Assembly (NCBI RefSeq): GCF_002571385.2
Contig: NW_019217797.1
Location: 861,856-925,855, forward strand
DNA: 64,000 nucleotides
Source: Stylophora pistillata
Lineage: Eukaryota
Direction of reading: 5' to 3'
Shown: positions 16,976 through 54,405 of the stretch, one piece after another
How the letters are laid out: the number at the start of each line of letters is the position of its first letter
How positions within the stretch are numbered: position 1 is the stretch's first letter
Translations under genes and position numbers: made by a program
The notes under the pieces: generated by a model
The model's input: only the letters and a program-made list of their open reading frames with translations
Database searches by the model: none
What the model was told of the DNA's origin: nothing

Positions 16976-17785
16976 ATGTCAAGTGCGAAGGAAAAGCAAT
17001 TGGGGTTACACAAAGTGATCATGGTTGGAAGTGGTGGGGTTGGAAAGTCAGCTCTTACTCTGCAGTTTATGTATGACGAGGTGGGTGATAAGAGCGCTCA
17101 GACTTGACTGTCTTCAGAAGCAGCTATTCCACAGTTTATTTTATAGTGAGTGATTCATGTTTGCCCTGTTAGTGGATAATACTTTTAACCATAATTTGGA
17201 ATTTTTTTATTTTGAGGGAGTGGAACAGAATTTTCTCGTATGCCCATCAAGCTAGTGGATAATTGAAATTTATTTTGTCATAATTTATTTCAGTTTGTTG
17301 AAGACTACGAGCCTACCAAAGCTGACAGCTATAGGAAAAAGGTTGTTTTAGACGGAGAAGAGTGTCAAATAGATATTTTAGACACGGCAGGACAGGAAGA
17401 TTATGCCGCTATACGCGACAATTATTTTCGGAGTGGGGAAGGATTTCTCTGCGTGTTCTCAATCACTGAACCCGAGTCATTTGAAGCAACATCGGAATTT
17501 AGAGAGCAGATTCTTCGCGTTAAGGGAGACGACGAACATATACCTTTCTTGCTGGTTGGAAACAAGGCTGACTTAGAAGATAAACGGCAAGTAACAGCTG
17601 ACGAAGCTCAATCGAAGGCGAAGGAGTGGAACGTAGCTTTTGTCGAAACTTCAGCTAAAACAAAAGCGAACGTTGACAAAGTATTCTTTGATCTTATGAG
17701 GGAAATTAAATCGCGGAAAGAAGACGGTTTGAAACCAGTTAAGGACAGTAAAAGAAAAAAGAAAAAGAAATGTGAAATTCTGTAA
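16976..17785 (+). CDS. RALA: Ras-related GTPase Ral (RalA/RalB co-ortholog), 2 coding exons
   Basis: Exons 16976-17080 and 17294-17785. GSGGVGKS, Ral effector loop [30 protein letters not shown], polybasic tail and CaaX CEIL. Confidence 0.97.
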
Positions 17786-20337
17786 ATCTGTGGCCTACTT
17801 ACTCGAAATATTGCAAAATATTATATGCGAACTTTGTATCTGTGATCCCGTTCTTTATGCACTCCCTTATGGATTGCGGAAACTTTCATTTTCTTCCTTA
17901 TTGAGATACTGTTACGTTTTCTTCCTAGTAATTTACGAGCTTATACCTCCAAGGAGAATGTTTTGATGTTATGTATCACACTGAATACATTTATTTTAAA
18001 AAGCAATTTACCAAGATACATGTTTAAATTTCTAAGTGACCATTACATATTTTCTCCTCTTACATAGGAGGGTTACGAAATTAGGTATGATTTGACTTGA
18101 CAGCTTTGATCATCATCCTGTATTCTCTAAGTAAAATTTCAGAATATTACTGTTATTTCTAAGGAAAAGTAACAAATTGGAAGAGCTTGAGCTGAGGTTA
18201 CAATGAATTTGAAGACAGTTATCAATAATTGTCACAAAGTGTTTATAAATAACAGTGACACGTAAATAATTTATGTTTCTTGAATTGTACATTAAAATTA
18301 TTGACTCAAGCTATTTTAGTTTTTTGACACAGACCACTTTATTTCATTTATCTTACTGTTGCAACTGAATCATGGCATGTTATAGGAATTAAATCACTGT
18401 TGTTTTAGTGTAAAATCAATTTTCTTGACTCTGCTCCACTTGCATTTGTAGATTTACTCAGGTGACATTTTACTGTCTCATGGTATGGTCAATTCTAGGA
18501 AGTGACAATACCATAAGATAAATTGCAGTATTTTATTTCTTATGTATTCACTAGAGTAAAAAATGAGAATCTTTTACACTGTATACAATGTTAATTGTGA
18601 TGATTTTAATAAAAGTAAGGATAATGATGATGAGTCTCTATATAGGGGGCTCACATCACTGAAAAGGCGTATTCTGCAAGGCCTTGTAAAATAAGTTTAA
18701 AACATAAAATGATAAAATACACCAAATGTGTTCATAATAGTTGCTTAATTACATAATTGATTGAAAAAACTAATTGCAGAGGCTAAAAAATCTCAAAACT
18801 GACTTAACTGAATATAGTTTTTCACTCTTTACTTAAAAACAAGGAGAGTTGACTTCTGTTAAAGGACATGCCAATACAGCTGACCTTACTCTAATTGGTT
18901 GAGGTTTGTGGTTTACAGTCTTGCTAAAATTACCCCATGCAAGGTGATTATAATTCCAAAGCAGTAATTCCACTTTTTAATGTGTCTGAAGAAGCAAAGA
19001 TAATTCTTAAAAGTTGCCCTGATAATCACATGCTCAGTGAGTGCTCTTCCACAGCATTCATATCATTTGAAAGTATTCTTTGCATGTGGGTCCAGTCTGG
19101 AAGGAAACAGTCAACTATGTTTCACCTGTAGTCTGTACTCTTGAGCCAGGTGCCACCAGCCTCAGCTATTTGCAGATCTCATTCTTTTCCTGGACAATGA
19201 TATTAATAAAGTTTATTGAATCTGCGTGGTAAACACTTGATGATCTAGTTATGAAGGACAGAGTAATGCGTGTGAACAGCATGCACAATATTGTTTGCAG
19301 TAAGAACTCCGTTATGTTGGATACAAGTGGCTTATTTCTTTAACTTCTATTCAAGTTTAAATTTACGTTTACAGGATACAAGGATCACAAAGCAAAGTCC
19401 CTCACTGGTATGAACTGGGCTTCCTGAACTTTATGTCCATAGATGCTAAAATAATTGTGGTATTTAAGAGATAATTAAAGCTTGCGTGCAGTTCAATTTC
19501 TTTAGCCGTCAAATCTGATGTTGTATTAGCAGCCCAATTAAACATCCATTTCAACACAGAAAATGTCTGTTTAGTCAGAATTTAATAGTTGGTTATCATA
19601 CATGGTTGTGAAAATGTGCCAAGCGACTGAAGCAATTGTTGAGAACTACCAAATCACAGATCCCTCATCAGACAAGTGGCCACCATAAAACAAAGTTAAG
19701 GGAAGAATAGAAGCAGGCTAATTCACAAGCTTGAAAGTAACACTTTCACTTTTCTTTCATCCAGCCTACCCTTTTAGAAGTCTAACCTCCTCAGTTAGTT
19801 CAATGTTTGTTTCCTCTTGCACTGGGCAATACTGTAGAGTATGATGTCTATGTCACTTAATTGTTGTGCATGCATGATTGAATCTGTGGTCCAGCCATAA
19901 AATAAGGAAGGCGAACAAAAGAGACTAGAAGTGTTATTTTGTAGCACCGCTTGGTAACAAGTTCAAAAAACCCAAAATAAGCAATACAGCTACAAGGTAC
20001 TGAAGAATCAAATTAATAACCAGTTAAACTTTTTATTGCCTTATAAAGCCCTGCAGTGGTCAGACATGTTAACAAGTCAACCAGCGTAAAACATGCTGCT
20101 TACAATGGTAACATGATAGTTTGGTTGGTAGAAAAATTACATACTGATGAGAAGACGACAACTTCTCTTCTAGCAAGATAATTAGCAGTTGCTTCTTAAA
20201 AATAAAATTATATCATATTATATACAAGTCTCTGATAGAGTGTAGTGTTGATGACATCTCCTGATGTAGCACCAGTATTCTTTAGGTTGTTAAGCGAAAA
20301 AAAAAAAAAAAAGAAAAACCATTTGCCAAATTCTTTA

Positions 20338-23300
20338 TCACCATCCTTGATAAGACTCCACACCATGCTGTGGACTGGATCCTCTGTTTCCAGCAGTAAC
20401 AGGAAGGTGATCATAATGGGAATCACTGTAATCAAAGACTTCGCGCTTTTGAGTAAAACTTTCTGAGTAACGTTCTCTGTAAAGATAAGGTGCCGACTCC
20501 TCCCTGTATGATCGTGTGGAGGAGTTATTGTAATCTTTGTTACTACCGGTAGCGCCCTCTCCATAACTGTAATGTCTAAACTTATCAGAAAAGGAACATC
20601 TTTCTTGATCTGTAGGAGGAGACAACTGTTCATAATGCACAGTGGACTGTGAATACCTATTTCCCCTGCTGTTATCACTATTTTCCCTTGAATACGGATG
20701 AGGATAATCATCCACAGAAGCACTGTGAGAATTGTTGCTTGATCCTCCTGGATAGTCCCTTGGGTAATCACGATAATATGAATCCTGCAAGAAAGAAGAC
20801 TTCGGGTTGTCTTCAGTATATGAATACTGGTGTGCTTCTTCTCGATCATAGAACACATGTTCATCTCTTGTGGAATACCCATCAGCAGAAGTTTCTTCTG
20901 TCTCCATTTCAACTGTCTCGATGCTCTGTCTGCGAAGAATCGTTGAAGACTCGAGTGATTCTAATGATCTCTCTTCTTGCTCCCCCGTTACTGATAGTGT
21001 AGGAAGACTGTTGGAATTTTCTAGGCTGTCAGCAACAGATCCTCTCCTTGTTTGTTTTGCTAAGCCTGCATCCTCAGCTACTTTCCCCTCTCCTTTGCGT
21101 CTGCGTTTCTTACTCCACATCTCATGACAGTCCTGCCATGTTGGTAGGCTTAAAGAACAGAAAATATGAATGAAAATTAAATTACTTCATTCCATACTAA
21201 GTACAAAAACCAGTTACCTTTATTAAAAGAATAATTAATAAGGAAGCTAGTGAGAGAAAACACTTTCAATGCATGCCTGTGGATTTCTTGGTCTAGTAAG
21301 ATATCTTTGTTGATCCCTGATAGTAGCACCCAAAGATAGAATAATACCTTGGTGGGCTGATGTTCTCACAAACAACATCCTTCAGAAAGGGATGCTGTAG
21401 GGATTCTTCTGCTGTGATCCTCTTCGAAGGATCCAGTGTCAACATGCGGTCAAACAGGTCCAATGCATCAGCTGGCATACTAAAAGACAAACTAGACGTG
21501 TCCCTTAATACTGAAGTGAAAGTTAAGAGTAGAAAAGCTCAAATGTGTCTTTTTCAACTGAAAAAGACAACGCATGATATGACAAGAAATCAAAGTGCAA
21601 CTGACAAGCTTTTTTTTTTTTCATTTATGGCGCAACACTGAAATGATCACAGAAGGAAAAGAACAGATTGAGATGTTGTCTGAGAGCAAAGCAGAGAGGA
21701 GGGCCGCTGAAATAAGAAACTTAAGGGTTGAAAGGACATGGCAGAAGATATTCATTACATTTACTTGATGGGAAGATAAACTGTAAACAATAACTTCAAA
21801 ATTCTCGAGGCAGCATTCAACACACAGGAATTTTATCGCAGGTGACTTACAAAGAAAATTCATCTTTCACTCTTCTGCGGTACTGTTTCTTGGGCTTCAT
21901 TGTGTGAAAGTGTGGCAAATGAATGACATCAGGCCATACTGCCGGTGTTGGTGTTCCACAGATACGGCTTCACATTGAAAGAAACAAATTCTAGTTGCTG
22001 GTATCACAAACAATACCTCAAAAATATGAGAATTACTTTATGTGTTCATTAAATATTTTTGGAATTGATCTCACACAACCAATATTTCATTACTTTTTAC
22101 CTAATCTTAAGTCACGGGTTGCAAAGTGCTTTCTAAGATTATTCACATGCAAAAACTAACAAAAACATTCATTAATTTGGTTTCTTGATCTAACAATTCT
22201 CATAAACTGTATCATTCCATTAATTTATAATTTTAATTAAATCAAGAAGCCCTTTCCTATCTTTTTGGTAACAATATATAGTTGGAAGCAAAGAAAGTCT
22301 TGAAGTAAAGAAGTTTTAAATTCTTTAGATTGGTGGTGGCATATTTCATATAGGGGTAAGGGGTGGAATTTTGTCCACAGAAGTGGAAACAGCTACAGTG
22401 CATGTCTTGATCTACTTGTCTCAAACGGCAGGTTAAACAATGTGTGTTTCTCTCCTCACCTGATTAGTTCAAGCTGACCTATCTCCTGTAATGCAGGAAA
22501 TATTGGTTTCTTGGTGAATAGTTCCCCCAGTATACACCTGAGAAAGAGAAACAAAAAGTGAAAGCAAGAAGTTAGATAAATATGACAATTAATAATTGTA
22601 AAGGAGTACAAGAGTGCTCCAGGAGAGTGACTTGGTTCAATAGTGGTCAATCTATCTAAAAACTGTACCAAACCTTATCCAGTTATGTAATGAAATTAGA
22701 TGGCATATCTAAGTATTTTCTACATACCCCACACTCCAGATGTCTATGCCAGGCCCATAGCGTTCTTCTCCCAGTAACAGTTCTGGTGGTCTGTACCACA
22801 ATGTGATGACCTTATTTGTGTATGGCCTCCTAAATACAACAAAAGTTTCAAATTAAAGAAAAAAATTTATTATATTCAGAAATGTATCAAAAAAATGTCT
22901 ATTAATACTAGTAATTTTTACACCAGTGCCAAAACAAAAACCACTATGGATACCTTATTGTGTTTATATACTTTTCAATTCTAAAAGATTGCAATTTGCT
23001 TGACTTGGATCTATCCATTCAATTAGTGTTTCCTCGATGAAACATAAATGTTTATCATCTCGCAAACGCATTTTAATTGCTAAAAATAAATCTATTTTGT
23101 TGTTGTTTTTGTTAATATTATCTTCCTTATGAAATAATTTGAATTTTGATGGCTAGTCAGGCAACTGAAAGGTAATGGTTTATTTTTAAGAAATGCCATG
23201 CAAAGTTAGTATTACATGATAGGAGAGCGGCTATGTTCTTGTCAACTGCTTATATCATTTTATATTTTAACACCAAATTCTTTGTCTATTGGGTGGACAT

Positions 23301-26300
23301 CAGTAGAGACAACTTATCTTAGGTAAGAAAGGGGTAACATTGCATAATATGACTGCACCTTTCATCTGCCTCGTACAATCTTGCTAATCCAAAATCAGCC
23401 AGCTTTAATTCTCCTCTGCAAAGACACAGACATTTTCAATTCACAATGTAGACTAACAAGTTTAAGTTCATAAATAAATAAAGGGGGTACATTTCTGTGG
23501 TGTTGCATAAGTGGCGAATATTTCAAGATAATTTGATTTTATCAATCGAGTTGCTACTGCAAATTGGCGAGTTGAAAAGAGTTTCTAAGGCTGACATTTT
23601 GAGTGTTAACCATTCTTTCTGACAAAGGGCTGACACTCAAAATGTGGGCTTGAGAAACTCTTTACTGTGGCCAATTTACATAATCAGCTAAATTGATAAA
23701 TCCAAACTATCAGTTCTTGTAAGTTCATAAATGACGGGTTACCTCAATTCAATAGGAGAATTTTCAAAAGTGTTAAGCCAAACTTGGTCACATCTTTTGT
23801 GCTTTTTAAAATTTAATTTTTTTCAATCTCATTCATCAATTGCTCACCTCACACAAGGTGATTAGCACGAGATAAGACACAACCCTCCACCAATAAGAGC
23901 ACACGCATCTCTATAACCACCCAAACAATAGTCCTTTTTACAGTTCCAGGTGTCATATTGGATTTGTAACCGTGCAAACATAATGGCGAGGCTAGTGTTG
24001 AGTGGCATTACTAGTCTTAGAGAGATTACAGTGAAATGTGGCAGCACTCTGTTGTTTTCATCAAGATATTTTGACAATGAATGACACTTTCCCTATGCAG
24101 GATACCGTGTCTTTTTCTTCGAAAAGAGGAAGACACTGTGCCACCTTTAATTGTGTTACTAGCTATTAAGATGCTAAAGGCAATCCAACAGGCCTCTATT
24201 TCTTCTCGTTTCCGAAGGACGTCCAGCGGTGAAACTGGTAGGGCAATCTCATGAAGCGCCAGCATGGAAAGGACAGATTCTTCATCAGAAAATGAACTTT
24301 TTTATGCTCAGAACATTTAAAAAAAGAAGACATCCATGTGACTTTTGTGTGGAAACAACAAGGTAATTGTAAAGCTGAATGAAATTCATCTCACATAAAT
24401 TACGGAGATCACTTGACCAACCAAGGGCTGAAATCCTTACCATAGTTACTTCCTATTTAAAGTTACTCTGGTTTTGTTCTAGGTCCTGGACATCTGCAAG
24501 AAGCTCTCCGTTTTCTCCACCACTCGATGGAAGGATGTGTCACATCAGCAAAGCATAAACTTTCGACACTAAGTCCGCCCAGTGATTCTGAGATCTTTTG
24601 TTTTGAGTTTCTGGTTATCATCTAAAGATGAAATTTCTATATTGCTGTATTTAAGAACCATTTTGAAGGAAGAACTCGCATTAAAAGTGCATTATAACGC
24701 AAAACATCAGCAGATCAGGTGTTTGGAAGAACAGCCAGGTCAACACTAGCCTCACTATCATGTTTGCGTGGTTACAAATCAAATATGGTGCCTGGAACTG
24801 TAAAAAGGGCTATTACACTATTCAATTCAAGTTAACTCGTCATAATAATAAACAAAGTAAAATAGAACCAAGAGTAAGTAAAAAAGCCCACCAGCCTGCC
24901 ACATAAAAGAAAATGTCGAAAGATACTATACATACTTGTTGCTCAGCAAAATATTGGAGCATTTAATATCTCGGTGAAGAAAATTTTTGCGATGACAGTA
25001 ACTGAGGCCATCTAAAAGCTGTTTTGTGAAGGACTTGATGTGATCTTCCGTAAAATGAACCAAGCCAGATTCCAGTACACCCATCAGATCATGATCCAGG
25101 TATTCAAACACAAGATAAAACCCACCTGACATCAAGCAATAGATAAATCATTGGCATCATAAATTCAGTAAAAAGTTATTAACATTGTCACAATTCCATT
25201 CTTTTGAAACATTTATATTTTGCATAGAATGTGTACTGAATGAAGGAGAAAAGCTAATCACCAGAATCAATATCTCACTCACCTTTATCTTTTCGGAAAT
25301 CAAGAGCATTTGGTTTGTCTGTAACAATTTCTTTCAAGTTCACAATATTGTGATGATTCAGCTGACGAAGGATTTTGATCTCTCTCACTGCTGTAATAGG
25401 AAAACCTTCCTTCTCATTGTCAGTGCGTACTTTTTTCAGGGCAACCAGTTCCCCTGTTCATATAACAAGAACATTTCCTTAAATCCCATGATTAGCAGAC
25501 TGGATTCAATTTTTATTTGGTTTATAGGCTTCAAGTTGAGATGAAATTGGGCCAATTAACCTCCAATTCTAGATTTGTGTTTACCTATGTTAAAGACCTA
25601 TGATAATTTGACCCAAAATGAAAAAAAAAATGGACTTGAACATTTATGTGATTAGCCAATCAAATGTTCAAAATTTCTTGGCTTATATCATGAGTATGGT
25701 AACTTAGTCCAATAATTTACAACAAAGTTTAACTTCAGTATGAAAACAGTCAAGAAAAGTGGAGACTGGTTCACATTTAAGAGAAAACAGTTTTCACTGA
25801 GTGTTACATCCACGCATAAATACCTGTTATCTTGTCCTTTGCTTTATAAACTTGCCCATATGTTCCTTCTCCAACTTGATCAATGATCTGAAACATGTCA
25901 ACACACCTTTCTCCCCATTCACTCTCAGCTGGAGTCTTTGGAGTGGTATCTGGTGTTGACAGTGGTGTTTCACTCTGACTGCTTGGCCCTGAAACTGAGG
26001 GCAATCCAGAGCCATCTGTATCCTTTAAAGGGCGTAATGGAGGAAAGGAATGCTGTGAAGACTTGGGAGATTCAGGAAGTTTTCCTCCTGGGGAGCGTGG
26101 CGAGTAAGAAGTAGGAGATTCACCTGGAGTACCAGGAAGTTCTGGTGGTAAAGGTAGTGGTGGTAAAGTAGGGGCAGGAGGAGGAGGTGGCCTCTCTTCA
26201 TCTGGAGGTAAAGGAGGTGGCTCCTCGCTAGGAAGAGGTGGTGGCACTGGCTCATTCAAAGGAGGAAGTGGAAGAGCTGGTATTGATTCACTTTGCGTTG

Positions 26301-27552
26301 GCTTTTTAGTTTCTTCACATTCTGTTTTAACTCTAGATGAAGTCAAATTAGCTCCCTTTGCAGGACCATTCACTGGAGAATCTTTTGCACTAGGTTCTAA
26401 ATTTTGTTTTGATTTGTTGATGACATCCTTCACTGAATTCTTGCTCACTCCATCTACAGTATCACCTCTGCCTTTGTCCTTAAATAAATAATCCTTGTTA
26501 GTCAAAAGTTTGTCTCTTGTGTCTCGGTTTACAGACTTGTCATCTGCTTTCCTTATGGTGTCATTTCTCGAAGAACTTGACCTCTGCCATGAGGCATTTT
26601 TGCTTCCAGACTTAAGACCTGATTGATGAACATTTGGGCTTCGAGGTGAACAGCGTCGCTGGGTCCTCTTTGGAGGTGTGCGACTTCTAATATTGGAGCG
26701 TGCCGGTGGAGGTGGTGACAAAGACCTGCTGCGTGGTCTGTTAGGGTTCCTCTGATTTTTCCTATTCCTTAACCCTGAATTCCTGAAGGGTGGTGATGGT
26801 GAATGACGTCCATATGGTGAGGGTGTTCGTCTCCTGCTGTAGGGCATGTAAGACCTGCCTCGGCTGTCATATGGTGAGAATTGTCCTATAGGTGAGCGAT
26901 ATGGAGATCTCTCTTGAGATCTGAACGTCTCCATGGGTGACCTCCCCCGTGATCCATAAGGAGGAGGTGATGGTGATCTTGATCTATGGCTGTAAGGAGA
27001 TCTTGACCAAACTTTCATCATTGGACTCCTACTTGGTGACTTAGGTCTGTAAGCTCTTGGAACATGAGGCGATTCAGAGCCTCGCCGCTTAGATACAGTA
27101 CGCATAGGGGAGTAGTGCCCGATTGTATCCCTGTTCGACAGCATTTTTGGAGATGGTGTCACGTCTTTCCATTTCGACCTGGAAACTGGCGACAAAGCGC
27201 CTCCCTCCATTAGCGGAAGATTCATGGGCGACTTGCCATGTTTCTTACGTTTTTTGCTTGATCCTTGTACTGTGCTATCCTTTCTCGACTTCTTTCGTTT
27301 GACACTAGGTTTTGATTTTTTCGACGCAACGGGCGAGGGGCTCCGTGAGATTGAGCTGTACCTTTGAACAGGCAACTGTTCGGTTTCTTCTGAAGCGGAG
27401 GAAATATCTTCGTATTGTTCCTTTAGCTTTTCAACTGAGGCCTCAGTTTTAGGGCGTTTTCTATGTTTCTTTTGCTTATGGGATGACTTTTTTCCTTTGC
27501 TATAGTTTCGAGCAGAAGGGCTCAATTCCTTCTCATTACGAGAACTGGGCAT
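20338..27552 (-). CDS. CDK12: Cyclin-dependent kinase 12/13 co-ortholog, 9 exons
   Basis: Exons 27552-25824, 25453-25283, 25125-24936, 23415-23359, 22829-22728, 22537-22460, 21967-21851, 21479-21348 and 21148-20338, all GT-AG and in phase. RS-rich and Pro-rich N-terminus, [38 protein letters not shown] and [12 protein letters not shown]. Confidence 0.96.
23525..23712. mobile_element. Old, CpG-decayed foldback Penelope-type pseudo-LTR in CDK12/13 intron 3
   Basis: GGCTGACATTTTGAGTGTTAACC...CTGACAAAGGGCTGACACTCAAAATGTGGGC...GTGGCCAATTTAC is the same family, with CG changed to CA/TG. Confidence 0.65.
23930..24811 (+). mobile_element. Non-autonomous DNA transposon with about 75-bp TIRs, AT TSD and decayed THAP domain (ISL2EU/PIF-Harbinger-like)
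   Basis: AT|AGTCCTTTTTACAGTTCCAGG...CCTGGAACTGTAAAAAGGGCT|AT. The interior reads HCATFNC...[12 protein letters not shown]...KRQHGKD...CSEH with stops, a THAP C2CH pattern. Confidence 0.8.
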
Positions 27553-27813
27553 CTTGATGAGAAGTTTGGGCTGAAATGCCACTACATTGTTCACTTAATT
27601 GAGAACTAAACCGGCAAAACAAAAGAAATATGAACTGCAATATATATCTTTTATAAGGAACGCATTTTCGTGAAACAGGGAGCGAGATGAAATTGGATTG
27701 TGGTAATGATGTTTTTCTCTGTCGCCGGCGCCATTTTGGATTGTGGAGGCATTCAGGCAAATTATTTTGCGCATGTGTCCCACGCATAAATTATGTTAAT
27801 TCGAACTTCGAAC
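27553..27813. promoter_or_regulatory. Bidirectional CpG-rich promoter region CDK12/13 <-> YAE1
   Basis: Start codons lie 261 bp apart and diverge. YY1-type motifs point outward (AAAATGGCG on minus at 27729-27737; AACATGGCG on plus at 27811-27819). An NRF1-like TGCGCATGTG lies near 27768. Confidence 0.7.
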
Positions 27814-30288: not shown

Positions 30289-30291
<3 letters not shown>

Positions 30292-30394
30292 GCCAAGGCA
30301 CAGAGAAACACAAGCTGAATTGGACCAATAAATGCTTGAAAAGTAGTTTTTAGTGAAAAAATTTTCTTAATTCATATTTATCAAATCAAAGTGA

Positions 30395-35565: not shown

Positions 35566-35602
<37 letters not shown>

Positions 35603-42200: not shown

Positions 42201-45200
42201 AAATTACTGAAATGAATAATAATGGTGAATAATTTATTATAAATACCTATGCCAAAATTAATGTTGGTCAATAGATAGATTAATAAAAAATTTCTAAAAA
42301 CAATTCTTGTAATATCAGAGTCATCCCTCTGGTGCCTTTTTATGATGACCAGTAACAAGTTCTGAGGAGTGGGTTGTTTCAGATATCACTGGTCAGATTT
42401 ACCAACACAGTGTTTGGCCATTTTATTGCTAGCTATCAAATGTCTTGCAGGTCCCAATGAATTCAATATAGTTAAAGCTGATAATTTTTGAGCCTTGCTG
42501 AACTCTATGTTTTTTTTTCTCTGTTATCCAGAGCGAACCTTAGAGGATCATGAAAATTTGATGTCCATATTGAAAACATGGGCACCAAGTTCAAACAACA
42601 AGTTGATGTTTAGAAAAGACCCTAGAAAGTACCATTTCTTCGCACACACAACTGTAAGTTGACTTCTATTTAATATAACCACATATAGGATTATTACTAG
42701 AAAAAAATCAAAACGTTTTATTACACTAAGCCCCCAAGCTCTCACCACCTTATACAAAAACTGTCAATTAGAAATGGAACTTATGTTCAACTATTTACAG
42801 AATTATTTTCCATCACATTTGTTGGACTCTGAGAGTTCAGACAAAGCAGTCACAGAGAAAGCACAGAAGGCAAAGACAATCTTACAACAGGTAGATACTG
42901 TTCTGTATTTCTTGTACACAAATATTATTCCAGACTGCACCGTTGCATTGAGTAGACAGTTTCAAACTTCTGTTGCAGTAGTAATTTGATTTATTTTCAG
43001 TTTTAAGTGTATCAAATACTTTTTTTTTTGCATATTACCAATACCTCCAGTGTTTTTTCAGTTGCTTGTATATATATTGTACTGGGCCCAGTTGTTCAAA
43101 GGCCGATTAGCTCTAACCCAGGGTTAAATTTTAATCCAGGTTTCTAAATTTCTCTAATCAAAAGCCATTTTGGGATAATTTTTCCTAGTTTTTTTAGGAC
43201 ATTCCATCATCAAATTGTAGACAAATGAAATTAAGCTGAATTTTCTTTCAGAGCTTTCAGATCTGAAATCAAATTTCACACTAACCCTGGGTTATCTTAA
43301 CACAGCTTTGAACAACCCGGTCCTGGTGTGTACCTGTATCCATTTAGCTAACTAACTTCTTATTATGTAGGGTGACGTGTAATCTTTAAATGAGTGAAAT
43401 AAAAAAATGGTAGAAAAATTGAGCAGAGGACAACCTGACCATTATTGTAAATGATCTGTGATAATCAGTAAATATGAACCAATGAATCATCAGGTAAAGA
43501 TAAAAACCATACAACTTAAACAGGTCAAGACTGAATTAATTGAAGGTTGTTTACTTAGTAGTGAGTAAAACTAGCACAAATATTGGGCTAACAGTACACA
43601 TAAACTATAGTGCTTTATCCAGATAAAACAAATGTGAAGAAACCCACTCTTGGATTCCTTTTTGTTTTCCCATAGAAACTCTTCAGTACCTGTACCAGAG
43701 TTCCAGAAATAGAGGGGATTTTACATTGCAAGGATTTTGGAAAGAAGTCATGGAGCAAGAAATTCTTCTTCCTGAGAGGATCAGGGCTTTATTCTTCCAG
43801 TAAAGGAAAGTCAAAGGTATCACTCACATATTGAAAGCATTGCCTGTTTAAACTTTAATATAATATCTCAACTCATCATTTGAAAAATCATTGTTCAATA
43901 TCTTGGTAGAAAGTCTTCTCCCAGCAAACCCCAAAATTAATGAATGGATGTTCTTTGAAAAACTTTAGAATTCTTCCCTTTTTACTTTTCATGAGACCAT
44001 GCTTTTTATTTTTGTGGATTATTTGTTTTTCAACCAGTAGTCAGAATTATTAAAGCTGTATTTTAAGTAATTATAAATGTAAAGATTAAGTTTTTTTCAT
44101 TTTATTAATTTGTTGACGATAAACTTGGTGTGGCTGAAATTTTCTGCAAAATGTATCAGAAGTCTGTATTTTTTTTCGAAAATTGTCCATTCCAAACTGG
44201 GTTAGCAAAAACTCTTGGGAATATTTTCAGATTTTTTTTGTTACCTGTTTGCCACAACTTGTTTTTGCATATTCTACCACAACCTACTATTTTTCCATTT
44301 CTTCTTTCAGGCCTCTAAAGATTTGGAATGCTATGTTCAATTTGATGGAGCAAACTTGTACAACATTATAAATCCTAAAAAGTTTCATAAAGCGCCAGCA
44401 GAGTTCTGTTTTTGTATTGTGGTATGTATGATTAATTAACATCATTAAATCTCTGTGAGATAAGTTACCTTAACGAAGGGCTTTAGTGGCTCCAAGCAAC
44501 GAAACCAAACAAGAAATAGTACAGTGCTGTAGGACTTACCCTCCCCACCCCCTAGCCATGCTCTGTAAACTTTTCCTTTGTTGCACTTTCCTGCCAGCCG
44601 CACAGAGCCCGAGAGTTGAAGGAGCTGAAGTGTCTTTCCACTGATGATGAGAAAACAATGATGAGTTGGATGATGGCTGTCAGAATAGCTAAGGTTGGTA
44701 ACATTATTTTGTTACAAATGTTGCGTGCAAATTATTAGTTGTGTTTGTACTTTGACCCAATGTAGCCCGTAGTAACGATCCGTTTAAACTCAATTTCTAA
44801 ACTATGACGCTCCTTTTTTGTCATATGATGAAAGATGGCGTCAACACTTAACTAAGATCAATTTCAAAGTCGTTGACAAAGCAGGCAGAGGACGAAAAGA
44901 AACATAATCATGTCAACGATTTCGATATCGAGGGACAAGTTATTCGCACTGCAAACTTCATTTTCAAGAGCAGTGGAGCTATATGACAAGACTAGTCTGG
45001 CTGATTCTCTCTTTCTCACTGATCTGGACGGTGTACGATAAACTGTGTTCCATGGAAGGCTGAAATGTCACACGACATCGGCGGCGCTTATTTGGTTGAC
45101 ACATTGAAATTGAAGTTATTGCATGGGTCATCGGTCTCGTTGGGATGAGTTAAACAGATTATTAGCAGATGAACAACATTTTTTGAGCAACATGAGAAAT

Positions 45201-48200
45201 TCTTCCTTTGGGGAAAAACACGCGAGATGATTACTTAGCCGTGAATTGAGGCCGGATATCTTTCTGCTTGGTGGCTACAGGTCGGTTTTTCACTCATAAG
45301 GTGAACCACACGTGTTTCTTTTTTTTTTTCTTTAAAGAAATTTGTGCATAGAAATCTTGATTGTCTGCCAATAACACGTACAGCTATTTTAAGTGCTACA
45401 CGGCAAACAAATCTTGGAAGCTACTGAGTTTTCTTTTGTGTACAAAGTTTGATGCCTGTACTCTAAGACATAACTTTGACCGAATTTGTTTTATTATTGG
45501 AGGATGTCATCTCATTCTAAAAGAAGTGAGCAGCAGTTCTATTTTAGGCGATTTCATTGTATTACCCTCTGTGTGAGAATAAAAGTTTTAAACGGTTCAA
45601 ATATCACCAAACAGGCTCTCAGAGAGCAGTGTGATACGACAGTGCTGGTTGATCGTTGAACTGGGTCGAAAGTGTCCGAAACTGAATTGGGAATTGAACA
45701 TAATTTGTTTTAAGAAGCGAAATTGATCATGTTTGTAACACATGCACAGAGGTATTAAAGCGATAGAATTTTCTTTTTTTTTTTCAATTGAGCTGCGATC
45801 TCTTAGAGACAAAAGACTTAATCACAACAAAATATAATGTCTTCAATCGGACTTGAGCTTCCCTTAATTACCAAGAATATTTCCTTGAGTCTGAAGATCC
45901 GTGATGTGTATCCTTGAAGTATTGTTTTTATCAAATGAAGGTGCTGTGAACTAAGCTTCAGCTTGAGAAATATTAGAGCACTATTAGCGTATTTTGTTTT
46001 TAGATAAGTTTAGCATCACTCTTGCAACACTCAAATTGCGGTCATGTAAATAAAGCAATAGACCAATACTTGGTCCGACTGTTACGGAAGCGGAAACTCT
46101 TGTGGCTGCGCCAGGTTATTTTGCATGTCTCCTTTTAAGTTCACTGAAGCGTTGTTTTGTCTAAATAAAGAGAAGGGACAGAAATAAAGTCGATTTTATC
46201 CTTTTATGGTGAAAATGGTACTTTTCGCTCATTTATAGGCGTAGTTGCCTTTTTTTCTCCTCAATACTTTGCTACAAGGGTTAGTAGAGGGAACTAACAG
46301 TGATGGCGCCGGCTTCAGCTGTCACACTCACGGCCAGTTGGAGTTCAAAATTAATCTAATTAGGCTGAGTAAAACTTTCTCAATGTTGTCGGACGAGATA
46401 AAAGACTTTTGTAGCCTGAGCTGAGCTTCCTCATGAGTGACGTAAGACATATAATGCTATCTAGGGCGTTACGTGTTACATTTCAGTCGCCACTGTTGGA
46501 AAGACTCCATGGCAGCACAATAAACAGGAACTGGAATGTTTGTTAAGATTTGGCTGTCTTTACTTATTTTCTTTTTCTTTTTTTTTTTTTCTTTTCCTTT
46601 TTTGCCTCCCGTGTAATGTCGCTCTCTAGCAAACCTGGAGAGACACCGATTCTTCTTTAAGGCGAAATGTGGTCCGTATTTTGCTCTCGTCGAAATAAAA
46701 CATTAAAAATTCTGTCTGGCCGCTTTGTTATTTAGACACGTTTATGGCCGCTCTGTTATTTAGACACGTTTATGTGGGAGTCTCTCCTCCCACCTCGCCG
46801 CAGGAAGAATCTTGTTCGGTCACGTTATTCGGCTTTCGAGGATGATTATTAGAACTTCCTTTCTTCTCCAAACAAACAAATGGCACTGTTTCATTGATTA
46901 CTGAGTGTGCGGGAAACCACTAACGTCGTTATTGAAGGTTACTGCTGCGGCGCGCAATCGGTCAGTTTACTTGCTGTCGGTGCCTCGTGAAGTTCTGTCC
47001 ATTTCCCGCATGAAAATGTGAGTGGAATGATGATAAGGTGACCTCTCATTGAACTTTCCATCTATTTTCATCACGCGACGTCATATAGGTTTACTTGCCG
47101 ACTTTCCGTGTTAAACAGACCTCTTATAATTCTCTGTACCTCAAGTCGATCCACTCACAATTTGTATACCAGTGTAGTCTGTGTTGGCATACTCATTACA
47201 TTCGAGTGTTTCGTGAAGTTGTGTACAAGCACTATGGAAGTTGCCGATCACAGTCGAAGAAGCTTTCGGCTAAAGGTAGCAAAGGATTTTAGTGATTTTA
47301 AAAGATAACACAGCTCTTCTGTTACTCTGTTCTCTGTTTTGGTGATTATTACTCTGAAACCTTAATGTGTGTAGGATATAGGCTCTATAAGAGAGGGGAA
47401 TCTCGGAGGAACTTTAAAAACAGTTTTCTTTCTAGCCATGATGTCAGTTTTATGCGAAGCCTGTTCGAGGCGTTTAGTTCATTATTCCACAGGGTCGTGC
47501 CTTTTCGACTTTACTATCGGTTCTGTCTTAAAGTTTCGTAGCTCTTTCTCTCTCGTGCAAAACGTCGCAGGCCAGCCCTGTTTATCTGCTCGTAGCTGTC
47601 TTCTGAGACTAGGCGGGCAAACCTCTGAAAGTAAGGATGACTACTCCCTAACATGTAGATAAATTAAACTGCAGGTTTCAGTGGATAAGTAAGGTACTGT
47701 AACCTGCTTATGGGACATCTTTTGATGTTGCCGTTACTTTCTACGGCGATAGCTTCGTTCTCTTGTAGTTCTTTGTTTTCAGTAAAATTCACAAATCTGA
47801 GTTTAAAAAGGCGTGTTTCGATTTGCACAGACTTAAGGTACAAGTAGACGGCGCCATCAAAACGTTTATAATGTTTATTAGTCAGTGTTCACCACGTGTG
47901 TGTCGTAGTTTTCATTTACAGTTGTCTGTTAGAGAGAAGTTATGAAAACAGATTTAATTCTACACTCCTTAATCCGGTCATTATCCTATCGTGCCTGTTG
48001 TTAGTGTTTCCTTATCTGTCGCGAGACAGCTTTGCTCGCTGGTCACCCTCCTACGTCAGGAGTATGACGTATGAACTCATTTACCCCTCGTTACTTCAAG
48101 ATATTTATTGGACCCTCCAAACTCTTTCTCAACTTATCGTTTTTCCTCTTAAGATAAGAAACTGAGATATTTTCAGATAATTTTCTTGAGCTAAGAATTT

Positions 48201-51200
48201 CTGCATTATTTGGCAAGATCCACGATAATTGTCGTTCGAATGTCTTCAACATAACTGATGACTGTCCCACTCCAAGAAAATCTCATTGTGCAGTTTTTAG
48301 TCTTTCTGTGTAGTTTTAGATGTTGGTGTTGTATGTTATTACAAGCAAGCAGTTATTGAAACTCCAGAATAGTGGTAGAATCAATTCAAGCATAACCTGA
48401 AACATGCAAATTATAAAAAAAGGAAAGAAAAGGACAGTGTATAAATATATATTATTGTTTGGAGGTTAATGGAGTGTAACAGATAGACATCAAAGGAAAT
48501 TTACTAGACAGGCCCTAACACGAACTTCTACAATGATTTCTCTTAGTTTGGACCTCAACTCCGCCAAAATTACGACGACATGATACGAAAGTTTGCCAAG
48601 CTAACGAAGTACCGTGAACAGAGTTCGGAAAGTCAGGTAAGTTGTCTGTTTGTCAGAAGTATTTTGAAACGATCATAACTTTCCTTTACGACGTCTGCAA
48701 GACTAATTAAAAAAATCTGACTCTAGTTCAGCTTCCTTTTATTCGCTAAATGTACATTGCGCTTAACGTGTAAGGTCTTTTTTAAAACTCCAATTTGAGT
48801 TTAACACATTTTATTGTTTTGGAAATGGCCCAATGTCAAAGTAGTCTTTAATTAAGATGTAGTTCTTTTTAATTAGCAGCTTATTTGCCGCGGCTTTTAA
48901 TCAGCGAAAAAGCATTGTTATCTTCTCGGCTTTATGCAAGTACAGATTTAGCCTTAAGAAGTTAAACAAGTAAAAGATGGGTTGACCAAAGTCCCTAACT
49001 AACTATGGGTTGACGAATGTCTTAAATTACCAGTCCAGTATCAGAGAATATGATTCAGCCTGTCCGCATTGCTGCACATAGTAGTATTGATTACACGGTA
49101 AATATATGGCTTTTTCTTCAAGCTGCGGGTAGTAATTCCCTAAGGAGTTGCTGCAAAGATTGCAGTATTTATTAATACATTATTGTGATACTTCAATAAA
49201 ATTGCATTTCATACCATTCTAGTCATTGTAAACTCTTATTAAAGAGATCTCTGTGCTCAATTAGTCGGTAAAAGCTGTTAGAAATCGTAAACTGATATGG
49301 TTTCCATCCTTGGTCTTCCCTTCTCCATAGAGTAGCTAGTTGACGTTTTGGACAAGTGATTTTGTTGTCAAATGGCCTAGAAAGTCTTCGTTTACATTAG
49401 TAACTCTTGCAAGCACGCACACTGAACAGGCACCACACCTGAGATTAGTTTTTTGGACGCAAATGGCTAAAATTAGCCTTATTAAGAAGTAAATAGCTCA
49501 ACAGAAACGTGAATTCTTATTCTAAATTAGCGCTCGCGAGTGATCTTCCTTCCAATAACAAATATTACAACAGTGGTGTTGACACGGACGATACTAATGA
49601 GATCAGTGTCTGGTTGCAAACCTTTAGATCAGGTGTTGTTTTCTTTCATGCGTAGTCTTTGACAACGCTTTTTGGAAATATTTATCCGTCTAATCCCATA
49701 CTTTTCTCTAATAAAGCTGTAGCCCAAAAGGCAATGTATTGTTTTCGCTATTGTTTTAATTATTGAAAACTGTATGCATAATGAAGTATGAGGTTGAGCT
49801 GGGCTGTGCCGAAATCTTGCCGGGTTTTCTTTTTGCTCTGCCATTATTTAAAGCGTTTTAAACTTAAGCGAGTTTTAATCAAATAAAACGAAATCTGTAG
49901 TTAAGTAAAGAAAACAACGAAGACTATGCGGTGAAATTGATGTTTCTCACGCTAAAATGTATAAATATCTTCAATATATTGGAATTGAATACGCTGGAGC
50001 AAGGTTTCATGTCATATCCCGCTTGTTTTGAAATGAAAATGACGTTATGTTTGAGGTATTTCCCTCCAAATATTGCCGCGGTGTTCACATATAATAGGCA
50101 CTAAGCCCTAGAAATGTTGGAAAACTTTTCTTTTAGTATCTTTTGATGTCCTGTGCAGATAATACGGACAAAGACAGAAGGCTTTGTTTTGATCGCTCGT
50201 TGGCTTAAATTTCTTTCCGAAGAAAACTTGCGAGAACTGATAATTCGTTTTTCTCCCAGTCAGAGATATATAATTGTGCTATTCAAGGTAATTATTTGTG
50301 GTTTATTGATTAATTCCTTATGCCTAGTCTTTTCATTTTGATTTCTTATAATAGAACATACTTTTATTATCTAAATATATCAACAAAGTTGAAATGGTAA
50401 ATTGGCCACCGTTACGATTATAAAGGCTGTCGTTTCGGCGTTAGCCCTTCGTTGGAGCGAATTGGAGAATCAATTCTCTAATTCGCTCCGACGAAGGGCT
50501 AACGCTCGAAACGTCAGCCTTTATAATCGTAACGGTGGCCAATTTACCATTTCAACTTTGTTGATGTATTCAAATTATTTCGTTACCCCCACCGACGCAG
50601 CCCCAAACAGTTTCTTTAGAAACTATCAGCCTTTATACTTTTATTATCGTTCTGTACTTTAATTGTTGTACTCTAGGTATTCAAAGTACAGGATTTCATG
50701 AAATGATTAGATATTTTTCTTTCGATTTTCTTCTCGAGCGATCGCTCTTTGGTGACGGGAATGACTCGCTAGGAAAGTTTGAACCTTAAGTTAATGGAAA
50801 ATCTCAGTTTTAATGTACTGAATGGAAATTACTTAAGAGAATTGAGTTACGGTTATTTTCTTGGCCAAGATACGTGTTTAAACCTTTGGTGTTTCTTTGG
50901 CCGAACGTTAGGGTTCTCCAGGTGTTTTTGTTTTGTTTTTTTTGTTTTGTTATTTGTTAACTTTTGAAATGATCGACAATTACTAATAGCAGTGCAGTAT
51001 CAGTTAAAGCTGACAACTTTGAGAAGCTGGGATCTGTTAAAACTTTCAAAGATTCTGAGATGGGGCGCAAACTTCCTCAAATCAAAACCTTTCTGGATTT
51101 GATGCGCCCTTTGCAGATGTTTATTAGCTATCAGAATTCCCAAGACGTTTTGTTTGGGAACCAGCGTGGACCCCAAGTGTCAGGGAACGAAACCTTCGAC

Positions 51201-54200
51201 TGGAAGACTGAGAAGTGAGACGTGCTTGACTGACTGTCGTATAACGCGGGTCATGATGGATAATGAGACAATCATATCTGAAATTTTAAAAAAATTGTAA
51301 TAAAAAAGGAAAACTGGTATAGCTAGATTTATTTTAAATTTTGATAAAAGTAAAGAATTTAAAGGCAGAAAAACTGGAGCTAACAACTAAGATATGATAT
51401 ACATGATACATGTAAGTCGTAATTCAAGTAACAAATGGTCTTCTATCACTAAGATACTGAGATGTATTATTAGCAATATTCAATCGCCGAGATTGTCCAA
51501 TCTCAAAAATTAATTGCGGAAGTAGATAAGGGCGGAAATTGTTACTCTGCCCCGGAACGACTAACATTAGAATGTAACCTCACCGTGACGAAACTTTTCC
51601 TTTAGAATTGAAACGTCTTGGATTTTTCGTAGGATATTTTCTGCCTGCGCAACCCGGGACTCTTTAAAACAAATTTAGCTGTCCCCCCGAGGGAACAGAT
51701 TTTAGGTACATGAGGTAACATCCTATTTCGGATTAGCAATTCCTGTGGCTAAGAATACTGAGAAAATAAGGAATTAATAAGCATCGTTTTGATTTGTAGG
51801 ACGTTTCAAGCGAGAAGGAAGACGAAGGCATGAAAGAAACCACAAGAGAGGGACGAGTTCCAATGGATTTTACCGGTGAAAGAGGAAAAGTCATTACGGA
51901 TTTAAACGAAATCCAACAACTGGCTAACATAAGAAACAACGCAGTACGTGTCAAATTTTATTCTTTGTCATTCGCAAATTTTTTCTTATTTTTCATGTTT
52001 TCTTTCGACTTAATGCGACTTATCGCAGTGATCATTTGTTAAAAAAGAAACTGTGAATATAACGTGAAGCAATTTTGCCGGCCACTAAACTCTTCGTCGA
52101 TTACAGAGGCCCAGAGACCCACTCTATCCAGACTGTAATATAAAGTTTTAACTGTTAATTTGTTTTTGTTTTTCACAGAAACTAAGTAAACGCATGTCAT
52201 CTGAACATTTCATCCCAAACCACACCGTTACCTCCGGTATGTTTAGCATGAGTGTTGCTTTGTCTTATTGGTGCCGACATTTTTACTTTCGCTTATATTG
52301 TATTGGTCGTTTTTATCCAAAGCTTAACGACAAACAACTGGTTTTACACACTTTTATTGAAACTGACGAAGACTGAAGTTCTAGTTTTATGATCAGTTAC
52401 ATCTGATCGCTATCTTGATTATTAAAATGTTGAGTAGGATTGAATCTCTTCTTTTCAGGGCACCATTTTGTCAATGAACCATGGTTTCACGGGAGAATAA
52501 CAAGAGAACACTCGCTTCACTTGCTTGTTGCTGCAGGAATAGACGACGGGTAAGGAATATTACAAGTAATACTCTTTGGAAGCCTTGTTGTCCTGGTACT
52601 GCCTCGTTGATCGCTCGGGGTGGGATGGGTGGGAAGGTGAGATCGCTACATGGACTGAAGCGGCTGCCAGAGGCGCCTGATAATAATGCTGACGTCCGAT
52701 CTCAACCTTACGCGGATAGTGTTAAGCGCGACTGAATATATCCACATAGAAGTCTGCGCTATATAAATGTAAAATGTAAATGTAAATGTATCGGTCGGTA
52801 ACCACGATAATTACGTATTCTTTAAAGTTGCGGGAATAAGAATAATAATATTTAATACTTATAATGCGCTTTTTCTATAAAAATACTCAAAAGCGCATTA
52901 AAATATTAATTGTTAAACCCGATAAAATTACAATATTTACAGTATAAAAATTTCCAGAGTAATTAGTAAAACATAGAATTTTTTAAAAATCTCAATATTA
53001 AATTAAATGAATAAATAATCTAACTAAAAGCCTTTTTAAATAAATATGTTTTAACAGAGCGTTTGAAGGAGTTGATTGATGTTTCCTGTCTTATTGGCAG
53101 AGGAAGACTGTTCCATAAGAAGGGGCAGCTATTGAAAACTCGCGATCTTCCATAGTCTTCTTCGTTCTTAGCCGAGGTCTTTCTAACAATATACCATTAT
53201 TGTTACGGCGTAGTTGATAATGTGAGTCCGGCAAGACAGAGACTAGATCCTTAAGATAGCTGGGCGCAACATCGTGAAGTATCTTAAATGTGACAAGGAG
53301 AATCTTAAAATCTACACGCAAACGCACTGGTAACCAGTGGAGTTCTCTTAGAAAAGGAGTAATGTGAAAATAAATGAAAGAGTGAAAACAAATTGAAGCA
53401 GAATATTTGGAAAATCATTTCTCGATGAATTTATCTCGGTGACATTTGACATCTCAATTTTGCGTGTAAAATCAATTTTGGAAGTATTTTTCGCTGACTG
53501 AGACTTGAAATTTAAATTAATATACGCGCTCATTTCTAATGAGCACCTACATTAATTCTGAATATGATGACTTTGGTTGAAAGCCGACTTTAATTAGCCA
53601 TTTTAGGCTATGGGTTAACAGTTTCAAAGCCATACTTTGAGTGGACAAAGCAATGAGTGCCTCGTTATCTTTTTCAACTACAGGTTGTTCCTTGTGCGCG
53701 AAAGCAGCAGCGTTCCCGGCGTGTTTGTGTTAACGTTTTGCATGAACAGAAAAGTCTACCACTGTCAGCTTGTTGAGGTTTGTATTTGCTATAGTATAAA
53801 AACTGATTTTGATCGATATCTGTTACTAATAGTCCCTGTACACACTACAATAACCTATTGTGAGTGTGTCTGTACAGCCTCAACGGAAAAGAGCTTGCAG
53901 GATGTGAGAAAAGTTTTAAAACAGTCTTTTGTTTAAGCCGGTCAAAGCAACCAGGCTAGTTGTTAGTTGTCTTATTTTACTGCGGAGGAAACTTTTTTCA
54001 TTATTTGAGCTGAAATTGTAACTTACTTCGTCGGTGAGTTGTGAAGAGGCCGCAGCGAAGCTTCGTAAATAGTCGAGTACATTGGATTTGAATTATTTAA
54101 ACATGATCATCCAAACCAGCTGGCAAGAGAACTCAAGTTTATTCTCTCTGTGATCTTACCTGTTATCGATCAATCTGGTGAAATATACAGACATAATATT

Positions 54201-54405
54201 TTTAATTACGTCATGTGATGATTAAAACCTAATAGAGTTATAACTCGTCTTATTTCAGGACATCGGCCAGGGAAGCACAACGTTCTTTAGTCTTGGCAAG
54301 GGACCAGCATTTGAGACCTTGCGTCAACTGATTTACTTTTACCAACAGAAACCAATCAATGGCGTTACTCTGGCCCTGCGCACACCGTGCCCCAAATCAG
54401 GATAA
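39261..54405 (+). CDS. GRB10: Grb7/10/14-family adaptor (RA-PH-BPS-SH2), 15 coding exons
   Basis: Exons 39261-39371, 39685-39718, 39807-40339, 41986-42148, 42532-42653, 42801-42890, 43676-43816, 44311-44421, 44598-44693, 48547-48636, 51800-51943, 52179-52236, 52459-52549, 53684-53777 and 54259-54405 are in phase. RA (W.L.E...GIERTLEDHE), PH (PEIEG..GKKSW..F.LRGSGLY..WMMAVRIAKFGPQLRQNY), BPS (VPMDFTGERGKVI) and SH2 (PWFHGRITRE, FLVRES). Confidence 0.92.
40673..41810 (+). mobile_element. Non-autonomous DNA transposon with 9-bp TSD and short imperfect TIRs (Academ-like, tentative)
   Basis: TSD TGTTGGAGG at 40664-40672 and 41811-41819; termini TAGACTTGCTCACAAGT / ACTTTGAGAAAGTCTTA. The interior is CpG-rich with broken ORF fragments. 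Confidence 0.7.
43085..43322. mobile_element. Harbinger-type MITE
   Basis: CTG|GGCCCAGTTGTTCAAAG...CTTTGAACAACCCGGTC|CTG, with a 3-bp TSD and internal TAACCCAGGGTTA repeats. Confidence 0.8.
50372..50640 (+). mobile_element. Penelope-type pseudo-LTR with about 100-bp inverted 5' duplication and hammerhead-like motif
   Basis: Palindrome at 50372-50573, motif GCTCCGACGAAGGGCTAACGCTCGAAACGTCAGC at 50485-50518, and a 3' part CCCCCACCGACGCAGCCCCAAACAGTTTCTTTAGAAACT shared with 61970-62030. Confidence 0.82.
52600..52790 (+). mobile_element. SINE 3' fragment with L2-type tail and (TGTAAA)n
   Basis: GGGTGGGATGGGTGG module (also at 30190), followed by TAAGCGCGACTGAATAT...GCGCTATATAAATGTAAA repeats. 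Confidence 0.6.
52838..53370 (-). mobile_element. L2-clade LINE 3' fragment
   Basis: HITPFLRELHWLPVRLRVDFKILL.TFKILH..APSYL..FSIAAP..FKRSVKTYLFKKAF, then the 3' stem-loop TAATGCGCTTTTGAG...AAAGCGCATTATAAG and (ATT)n. Confidence 0.85.

Follow-up and report, generated by a model that had tools for sequence, protein, structure and literature searches.

A five-gene Ral-CDK12/13-YAE1-LANCL-GRB block near Hox-type genes in the coral Stylophora pistillata, with a probably ancestral Ral-CDK12/13-YAE1 trio

The DNA analysed here, hereafter the window, is a stretch of 64,000 nucleotides from the coral Stylophora pistillata (C14:861856-925855; C14 is a 1.46-Mb scaffold in an assembly of 398 Mb and 5,513 contigs). 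At positions 16976-54405 of the window, five genes follow in direct succession, Ral (+), CDK12/13 (-), YAE1 (+), LANCL1/2 (-) and a GRB7/10/14-type adaptor (+), which are unrelated to one another and are housekeeping or signalling genes (Table 1). The Ral-CDK12/13-YAE1 part of this block is best explained as a remnant of a gene neighbourhood of the cnidarian-bilaterian ancestor, with the block passively retained in a slowly rearranging anthozoan genome; a probability of roughly 0.6 is given to this explanation. The trio is probably ancestral, the order of all five genes is unproven, and the block is a real but ordinary addition to a well-known class of ancient microsynteny relics.

Ral, CDK12/13 and YAE1 are neighbours in the coral and in mouse and human; three of the five block genes are still adjacent in mammals. 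A mouse locus table gives the order Sugct, Mplkip, Cdk13, Rala, (Gm5628), Yae1d1, Vps41, Gm5628 being a predicted gene listed between Rala and Yae1d1 (PMC7674618), and a rat/human synteny table has SUGCT, CDK13, MPLKIP, RALA and YAE1D1 within 2 Mb of human chromosome 7, with Inhba and Gli3 in the corresponding interval of mouse chromosome 13 (PMC5774710). A sequence-only reading of the window had described YAE1, RALA and CDK13 as neighbours in human, and the two tables are in line with this. The likeness of the coral trio to the mammalian 7p14.1 trio YAE1(D1)-RALA-CDK13 lies in the same three families, consecutive in mouse bar the one predicted gene; the coral trio differs in its order (Ral-CDK-YAE1), in its extent (within 13 kb) and in the head-to-head arrangement of CDK12/13 and YAE1. 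A rough estimate of our own, assuming full shuffling within each linkage group (about 600 genes), gives about 0.2 triples expected to be consecutive in both genomes genome-wide, the trio having been noticed post hoc. Hundreds of pairs are listed in published surveys of genuinely conserved blocks, and it is because so few chance triples are expected against so many catalogued pairs that the trio is rated as probably ancestral.

As in the microsyntenic blocks described for metazoans (Irimia et al. 2012, PMC3514665; Simakov et al. 2013, PMC4085046; Robert et al. 2022, PMC8851819), unrelated genes are neighbours in a cnidarian and in vertebrates; the coral block differs from them in that its order and orientation are not conserved, and three of its five genes are adjacent in mammals. 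Divergent promoters shared by some pairs are one of the constraints discussed in these studies. The block was not found by gene name in the readable supplements of the microsynteny surveys, nor was it described in publications returned by text searches for the gene combinations. A comparison of Ral exon 2 with metagenome contigs yielded 80 loci, mostly short and transcript-like, and a tblastn search with the coral exons showed no other block gene next to any Ral, an uninformative outcome.

The family assignments were made with protein searches run exon by exon, without joined spliced models, and all five assignments of the sequence-only reading hold in exon-wise Pfam, PDB and blastp comparisons. 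Ral gave a Pfam Ras match, and its exon 2 scored 260.6 bits against RalA, 243.8 against RalB and 178.9 against KRas in PDB. A switch/effector stretch of 23 residues is identical to RalA, and the C-terminus is a polybasic run followed by CEIL, a CAAX box ending in Leu, and the stop. A polybasic region with such a CAAX box is the motif that defines Ral; the next-best locus of the genome reaches no more than 45% identity. Exon 1 of CDK12/13 encodes 596 residues that are RS-rich (many Ser, Arg and Pro), and exon 2 carries a PITAIRE-type cyclin-K helix, PITAIRE being a CDK12/13 motif. Kinase exon 3 scored 118.6 bits against CDK12, 114.6 against CDK13 and 57.5 against CDK9, and a stretch of 18 residues behind the kinase domain (DCHEL motif, polybasic) matched only CDK12 and CDK13 chains in PDB; the next-best kinase loci in the genome are 40-46% identical to the coral CDK12/13.

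Exon 2 of YAE1 matched Pfam Yae1_N, a domain of GX3G-type repeats, with 42.9 bits (cut-off 27.5) as the sole Yae1_N match in the genome. The YAE1 proteins of other corals (P0124-P0126, 239-248 residues) align to all three exons, and the fungal matches include one named 'Protein YAE1'. The assignment rests on these named matches and on the domain, which is the same Pfam domain that LTO1/ORAOV1 carries. The NCBI isoform X1 of YAE1 (P0001, LOC111340812) begins with a different first exon, located in intron 1 (28134-28286), and is 100% identical to the window over the two exons in common; the alternative exon encodes a non-conserved, low-complexity N-terminus, and other corals use 27814-27906. Ral, CDK12/13 and YAE1 of the coral are, as judged from these comparisons, single pro-orthologs of RALA/B, CDK12/13 and YAE1. 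For each gene of the block, either the genome holds no second gene of the family or the block gene is the one of vertebrate type.

For LANCL, Pfam LANC_like matches were obtained on four exons, and HWCHGAPG and GICHG, the zinc-site motifs of the LanC-like fold, are both present (exons 32614-32787 and 32314-32496). A second LANCL locus of the genome lies on scaffold C39, and its best named matches, from corals to mammals, are all 'lanC-like protein 3'. Exon-wise blastp scores were summed against 93 full-length LANCL proteins, of which the LANCL3 set comprised 71: the exons of the block gene sum to 352-413 bits against named LANCL1/LANCL2 and to at most 317 bits against the LANCL3 set, whereas the relation is reversed for the C39 pieces (170-221 bits against LANCL1/LANCL2, up to 477 against the LANCL3 set). 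The block gene is therefore predicted to be the LANCL1/2 pro-ortholog and the C39 copy to be of LANCL3 type. Large LANCL-containing proteins were considered as possible fusions with neighbour genes and rejected as such; they contain only tandem LANCL domains.

Reads were aligned over 35700-41600 from one stranded raw-read RNA run, two polyA contig runs and one probable DNA run. The spliced reads have joints from 36007 to 36416 and from 36536 to 38150 (introns 2 and 1 of LANCL), and the latter joint places exon 1 of LANCL at 38150-38233. The in-frame TAG in exon 3 of the reference might suggest a pseudogene, a reading that was rejected: at 35991, where the reference has C on the plus strand, 12 of 12 raw RNA reads and every contig of the three other runs have G, so that all four runs read Tyr. 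The TAG is either an allele confined to the reference or an erroneous base, and LANCL itself is intact; left uncorrected, it would truncate LANCL gene models built on this assembly. The block genes are real and intact; transcription is seen for the two of them that fall in the read-aligned stretch, LANCL and GRB.

Two introns of LANCL contain repeated DNA. In the retroelement remnant of intron 1, a gag-like open frame (36961-37857; Pfam Retrotrans_gag, 27.6 bits) is enclosed by two direct repeats that share 96% identity (36675-36808 and 37858-37991). A position of this remnant between LANCL and GRB was considered and rejected, since spliced reads remove it as LANCL intron 1. Contigs of the DNA run join 36666 to ~37991, omitting one repeat and the gag-like interior; these could represent a solo-repeat allele at the site, or they could stem from copies of the element elsewhere in the genome. 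In intron 2, the sequence 36094-36487 is a repeat of very high copy number, with a word depth of >=10^5 in RNA and DNA runs and ~700-900x on both strands in the raw RNA reads; no Rfam or tRNA match was obtained for it. It probably caused the 27-N assembly gap beside it, which the mRNA joint from 36007 to 36416 skips; the flanking exons are in one mRNA and in the expected phase.

The fifth gene gave, on successive exons, Pfam RA_2 (24.2 bits), then RA and PH matches. Its PH exon is about as close to RAPH1 (lamellipodin; 50 bits) and RIAM (45) as to GRB14 (46) and GRB10 (41) among RA-PH structures. The SH2 domain matched Pfam with 27 bits (cut-off 21) on exon 53685-53777, with WFHGRITRE on the preceding exon. 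Between PH and SH2 lies a weak Pfam match to BPS (51800-51946; 15.9 bits at E = 0.013, short of the 27-bit cut-off); a genome-wide search with the BPS profile gave no match. Exon ends beyond exon 4 are approximate, and the order from RA to SH2 is that of the genomic exons. A second RA-PH gene, on scaffold C118, is RIAM/lamellipodin-like as judged from its PH exon, and no SH2 exon was found within 18 kb downstream of it. Because the gene of the block bears an SH2 domain and no such exon was found for the C118 paralog, the former is taken as the GRB-type member of the family; by sequence, LANCL and GRB are thus the LANCL1/2-type and GRB-type members. PGAP3 (Per1 domain) lies about 22 kb from the C118 gene (C118:396188-402898 and 424497-427741). 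We take human PGAP3, a core gene of the HER2 amplicon, to be about two genes from GRB7, and the C118 arrangement may reflect an old linkage of PGAP3 with an RA-PH adaptor, or coincidence.

No further gene was found between the five within 16976-54405, where only transposon remnants, in introns, were seen; ten other long open frames of the interval gave no family match, and no Rfam family and no tRNA was found in it. The sequence-only reading had proposed five consecutive genes without an intervening gene, and exon reading together with domain searches confirms this.

The scaffold that carries the block also carries a cluster of homeobox genes. Of 143 homeodomain matches in the genome, 11-12 lie on C14, for which about 0.5 would be expected from its share of the genome (0.37%). 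Ten homeodomains were read, in the stretches C14:414080-515217 and C14:664761-678333, with subtypes called from signature residues, not from a tree. Seven are of Hox type (ELEKEFHFNRYL...RRIEIA...WFQNRRMKWKK; at 414, 424, 431, 437, 462, 473 and 515 kb), that at 431 kb having an in-frame stop (430880); one is of Evx type (500 kb), one of Mnx type (678 kb), and one further ANTP homeodomain, possibly Rough, lies at 665 kb, 13 kb from the Mnx-type one. Ral starts at C14:878831, which puts the Mnx-type gene 184 kb and the Hox/Evx genes 350-465 kb away from the block. The block had been assigned to the Hox-bearing linkage group, and this assignment is supported directly by the homeodomains at 184-465 kb. 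That this linkage group has been conserved as a whole was known before, and such conservation carries no information on gene order.

The anthozoan HOX cluster H1 comprises several Hox genes with a single Evx, Rough and Mnx gene each, according to Ying et al. 2018 (PMC6214176). C14 resembles it in having several Hox-type, one Evx-type, one Mnx-type and one further ANTP homeodomain, whereas the five-gene block is a neighbour of the cluster and not a part of it; the accessible part of that paper does not mention a linkage of the block to H1. Between the Hox-Mnx cluster and the block there is a tandem cluster of about ten single-exon basic helix-loop-helix (bHLH) genes (C14:766-817 kb, 45-95 kb before the window). 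One of its members is TCF15/paraxis-like (L094:5218-5700), the others are interrelated, and the one examined among them, L090, is of a generic group-A type; a NeuroD-like identity of the cluster was considered and found unsupported.

CDK12/13 with YAE1, and LANCL with GRB, are divergent pairs on very short shared promoter regions, as predicted from the start codons in the case of CDK12/13-YAE1. The start of YAE1 is placed 261 bp from that of CDK12/13 because the YAE1 proteins of other corals align to the first exon, and the ratio of observed to expected CpG is higher in 27553-27813 (1.15) than over the window as a whole (0.69). For the second pair, molecules of the LANCL strand end at 38262, and the GRB joint from 38467 to 39144 has at least 121 nt upstream, so that exon 1 of GRB starts at or before 38347; the strands of the RNA reads fit opposite orientations of LANCL and GRB. 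The sequence-only reading had seen in two bidirectional promoters a possible glue of the block. Both promoters exist in the coral; their role in holding the block together in vertebrates does not stand, because order and orientations in mouse differ from those in the coral.

Several observations weigh against an ancestral origin of the block, its trio included. The adjacency of LANCL and GRB is without a human counterpart, the two being on the same chromosome arm only, and the coral Ral-CDK-YAE1 (+,-,+) differs in order and orientation from mouse Cdk13-Rala-Yae1d1. The comparison covers two lineages, coral and mammals. The trio is linked to LANCL-GRB by the scaffold join across the 87-N gap at 30787-30873. 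None of the immediate flanks of the block is, we presume, placed in the human Hox paralogon. On C14 there is no EGFR/insulin-receptor-type L-CR-L gene, the sole Recep_L plus Furin-like gene of the genome being on C757, so that the EGFR/ERBB gene looked for elsewhere on the scaffold is not there; STARD3 (C322), PGAP3 (C118), lunapark (C2739) and PDE1 (C409) lie on other scaffolds, and the TGF-beta and BAR families match only scaffolds other than C14, negatives that are uninformative at chromosome level in an assembly of 5,513 contigs. COBL, the NeuroD C-terminal domain, MED1, CALCOCO and secernin gave no match anywhere in the genome. A microsynteny older than the cnidarian-bilaterian split is probable for Ral, CDK12/13 and YAE1, which are adjacent in mouse and human, and not for LANCL and GRB, which we take to be megabases apart in human (LANCL2-GRB10 ~5 Mb, LANCL1-GRB14 ~46 Mb).

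The differences in order and orientation, the distance between the human LANCL and GRB genes and the restriction to two lineages would also be expected if linkage had been conserved only at the level of the chromosome, the five genes deriving from the ancestral Hox-bearing group, their packing being anthozoan or scleractinian and the likeness to Cdk13-Rala-Yae1d1 a coincidence. The very limited synteny between coral and sea anemone overall, to which the HOX cluster is an exception (Ying et al., PMC6214176), points the same way. We nevertheless regard this explanation as rather unlikely in view of the small number of chance triples estimated above and of the finding that CDK12 and GRB7 share a human amplicon while coral CDK12/13 and GRB lie three genes from one another. 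It is distinctly improbable that the block as a whole owes its persistence since before the cnidarian-bilaterian split to selection on the two bidirectional promoters, acting through co-regulation of CDK12/13 with YAE1 and of LANCL with GRB. The head-to-head arrangement and short spacing of both pairs and the locally raised CpG content would fit such selection, but Rala sits between Cdk13 and Yae1d1 in mouse, and the human map has YAE1, RALA and CDK13 all on the same strand, with RALA in the middle of a trio spanning ~0.5 Mb and no shared promoter, and LANCL2 ~5 Mb from GRB10. Moreover, a shared promoter can lock the two genes of a pair, but it has no hold on the tail-to-tail links Ral-CDK and YAE1-LANCL.

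A scaffolding artefact, i.e. a Ral-CDK12/13-YAE1 contig wrongly joined to a LANCL-GRB contig, would have to be located at the 87-N gap, which is the sole link of the two parts and borders on simple (TA)n and AT-rich sequence. The gap lies outside both coding regions, 1,015 bp past the YAE1 stop and 618 bp past the LANCL stop, with candidate polyA signals of both genes before it. Both sides thus look like plausible 3' ends of convergent genes, and both carry genes with human relatives on 7p; small estimated gap sizes usually derive from many spanning read pairs. The rest of C14 is coherent, with a Hox cluster layout that matches the anthozoan clusters of PMC6214176. A wrong join is accordingly very improbable.

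The block had further been proposed to give the ancestral gene order of the region that includes the HER2 amplicon. The placement of CDK12 and GRB7 in the HER2 region is confirmed, both being in a gene list of the amplicon (PMC9496705), and the coral counterparts are three genes apart; LANCL2 and EGFR occur in one amplicon (PMC8404333, abstract). The coral differs in that the ERBB2-type receptor, STARD3 and PGAP3 are elsewhere (TCAP, PNMT and MIEN1 were not searched for). Because the core of the amplicon is without counterpart in the block, the block does not give the ancestral amplicon order. With the receptor, STARD3 and PGAP3 elsewhere and LANCL and GRB apart in human, that order is not established, and the HER2 amplicon is left unexplained by the block, which lacks the receptor and its core neighbours. 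The wider comparison with the vertebrate Hox/ERBB paralogon (human 2q, 7p, 12q and 17q) has a similar outcome: the human relatives of the block genes are on 7p, 17q12 and 2q (we take GRB10 to be on 7p and GRB14, LANCL1 and RALB on 2q), whereas C14 is without a match for an ERBB-type receptor, STARD3, PGAP3, lunapark, PDE1 or TGF-beta.

If the trio is a remnant of the ancestral neighbourhood, LANCL and GRB would come from the same ancestral Hox-linked chromosome region, and their tight pairing would be either ancestral or a product of the coral lineage. The block would have been retained passively in a slowly rearranging anthozoan genome, in which a break within a pair would be harmful owing to the very short intergenic distances and the shared promoters. 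The vertebrate descendants would then have been scattered over 7p, 17q12 and 2q by two rounds of genome duplication, loss of paralogs, local inversions and intergenic expansion. A bolder version, possible though rather doubtful, is that the block and the Hox-Evx-Rough-Mnx cluster 184-465 kb away are close to the core of the ancestral Hox chromosome; human 7p15-p11 (HOXA/EVX1 ... YAE1-RALA-CDK13 ... GRB10 ... LANCL2) would then be a stretched and shuffled copy of a sub-megabase region, and 17q12 (CDK12, GRB7) and 2q (RALB, GRB14, LANCL1) would be reciprocally thinned duplicates.

Table 1. Features of the five-gene block, in positions of the window.
Feature	Position	Strand	Remarks
Ral coding exon 1	16976-17080	+	MSSAKEK...MYDE, donor GT at 17081; six-frame reading
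Ral coding exon 2	17294-17785	+	ends KKKKKCEIL, then stop; PDB matches
CDK12/13 coding span, nine coding exons	20338-27552	-	ATG at 27552-27550; Pfam Pkinase
CDK12/13 exons (approximate; internal ends approximate)	25807-27552, 25278-25457, 24935-25135, 23376-23435, 22733-22834	-	
CDK12/13 exons, continued (approximate)	22459-22536, 21850-21969, 21359-21478, 20338-21150	-	stop at 20338
CDK12/13-YAE1 divergent promoter region	27553-27813		261 bp between start codons, read directly
YAE1 coding span	27814-29772	+	exons 27814-27906, ~29033-29152 (Yae1_N), ~29239-29772
Assembly gap, 87 N	30787-30873		between convergent 3' ends of YAE1 and LANCL
LANCL1/2-type coding span, nine coding exons	31491-38233	-	Pfam LANC_like, spliced reads
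LANCL exons 1-3	38150-38233 (transcript to ~38262), 36416-36536, exon 3 from 36007	-	
LANCL further exons (approximate)	34138-34371, 33153-33293, 32614-32787, 32314-32496, 31962-32036, 31491-31568	-	
In-frame TAG, LANCL exon 3 of reference	35993-35991	-	other samples read TAC (Tyr)
Assembly gap, 27 N	36198-36224		LANCL intron 2, beside very high-copy repeat 36094-36487
Retroelement remnant	36675-37991	-	inside LANCL intron 1; 134-bp direct repeats around gag-like frame
LANCL-GRB divergent promoter	38263-38346		outermost transcribed bases at most ~85 bp apart
GRB7/10/14-type adaptor	38347-54405	+	ATG at 39261; RA, PH, weak BPS, SH2 order
GRB exons 1-4	non-coding exon 1 to 38467; 39144-39371; 39685-39718 (34 nt); exon 4 from 39807	+	RNA joints
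GRB RA and PH exons (approximate)	RA 41995-42150, 42531-42640; PH 43700-43822, 44314-44418, 44595-44690	+	
GRB linker, BPS and SH2 exons (approximate)	linker 48547-48636; BPS 51800-51946; SH2 52458-52550, 53685-53777, 54244-54405 (stop)	+	

The block is flanked upstream by a kelch gene, a G-protein-coupled receptor gene and TRNT1, and downstream by NTF2 and a bZIP gene. The immediate upstream neighbour is a TRNT1-like CCA-adding tRNA nucleotidyltransferase gene (PolyA_pol and RNA-binding domains; 13347-15842, +), and the immediate downstream neighbour is an NTF2-like gene called by eye (57305-58830, +); the human counterparts of these two are presumably not on 7p, 17q or 2q. Near-identical copies at 55456-55790 and 56438-56772, with open frames of 90 and 60 residues that differ by one or two residues, flank a 559-N gap at 55826-56384; they represent a tandem duplication, or else the assembly has duplicated the stretch at a gap edge.

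For coral genomics, the analysis provides corrected first exons of LANCL and GRB, the reference base that truncates LANCL, and the link of the block to Hox genes on one scaffold. If the neighbourhood is ancestral, it would illustrate the fate of a tight gene neighbourhood after two genome duplications, with Ral-CDK-YAE1 kept at 7p14.1, CDK-GRB at 17q12, and Ral, GRB and LANCL only loosely linked in a third copy on 2q. Should the trio or the block recur in early-branching or slow-evolving animals, it would be a well-anchored marker beside the Hox cluster, and such a marker would help to rebuild the gene order of the Hox paralogon before its duplication.

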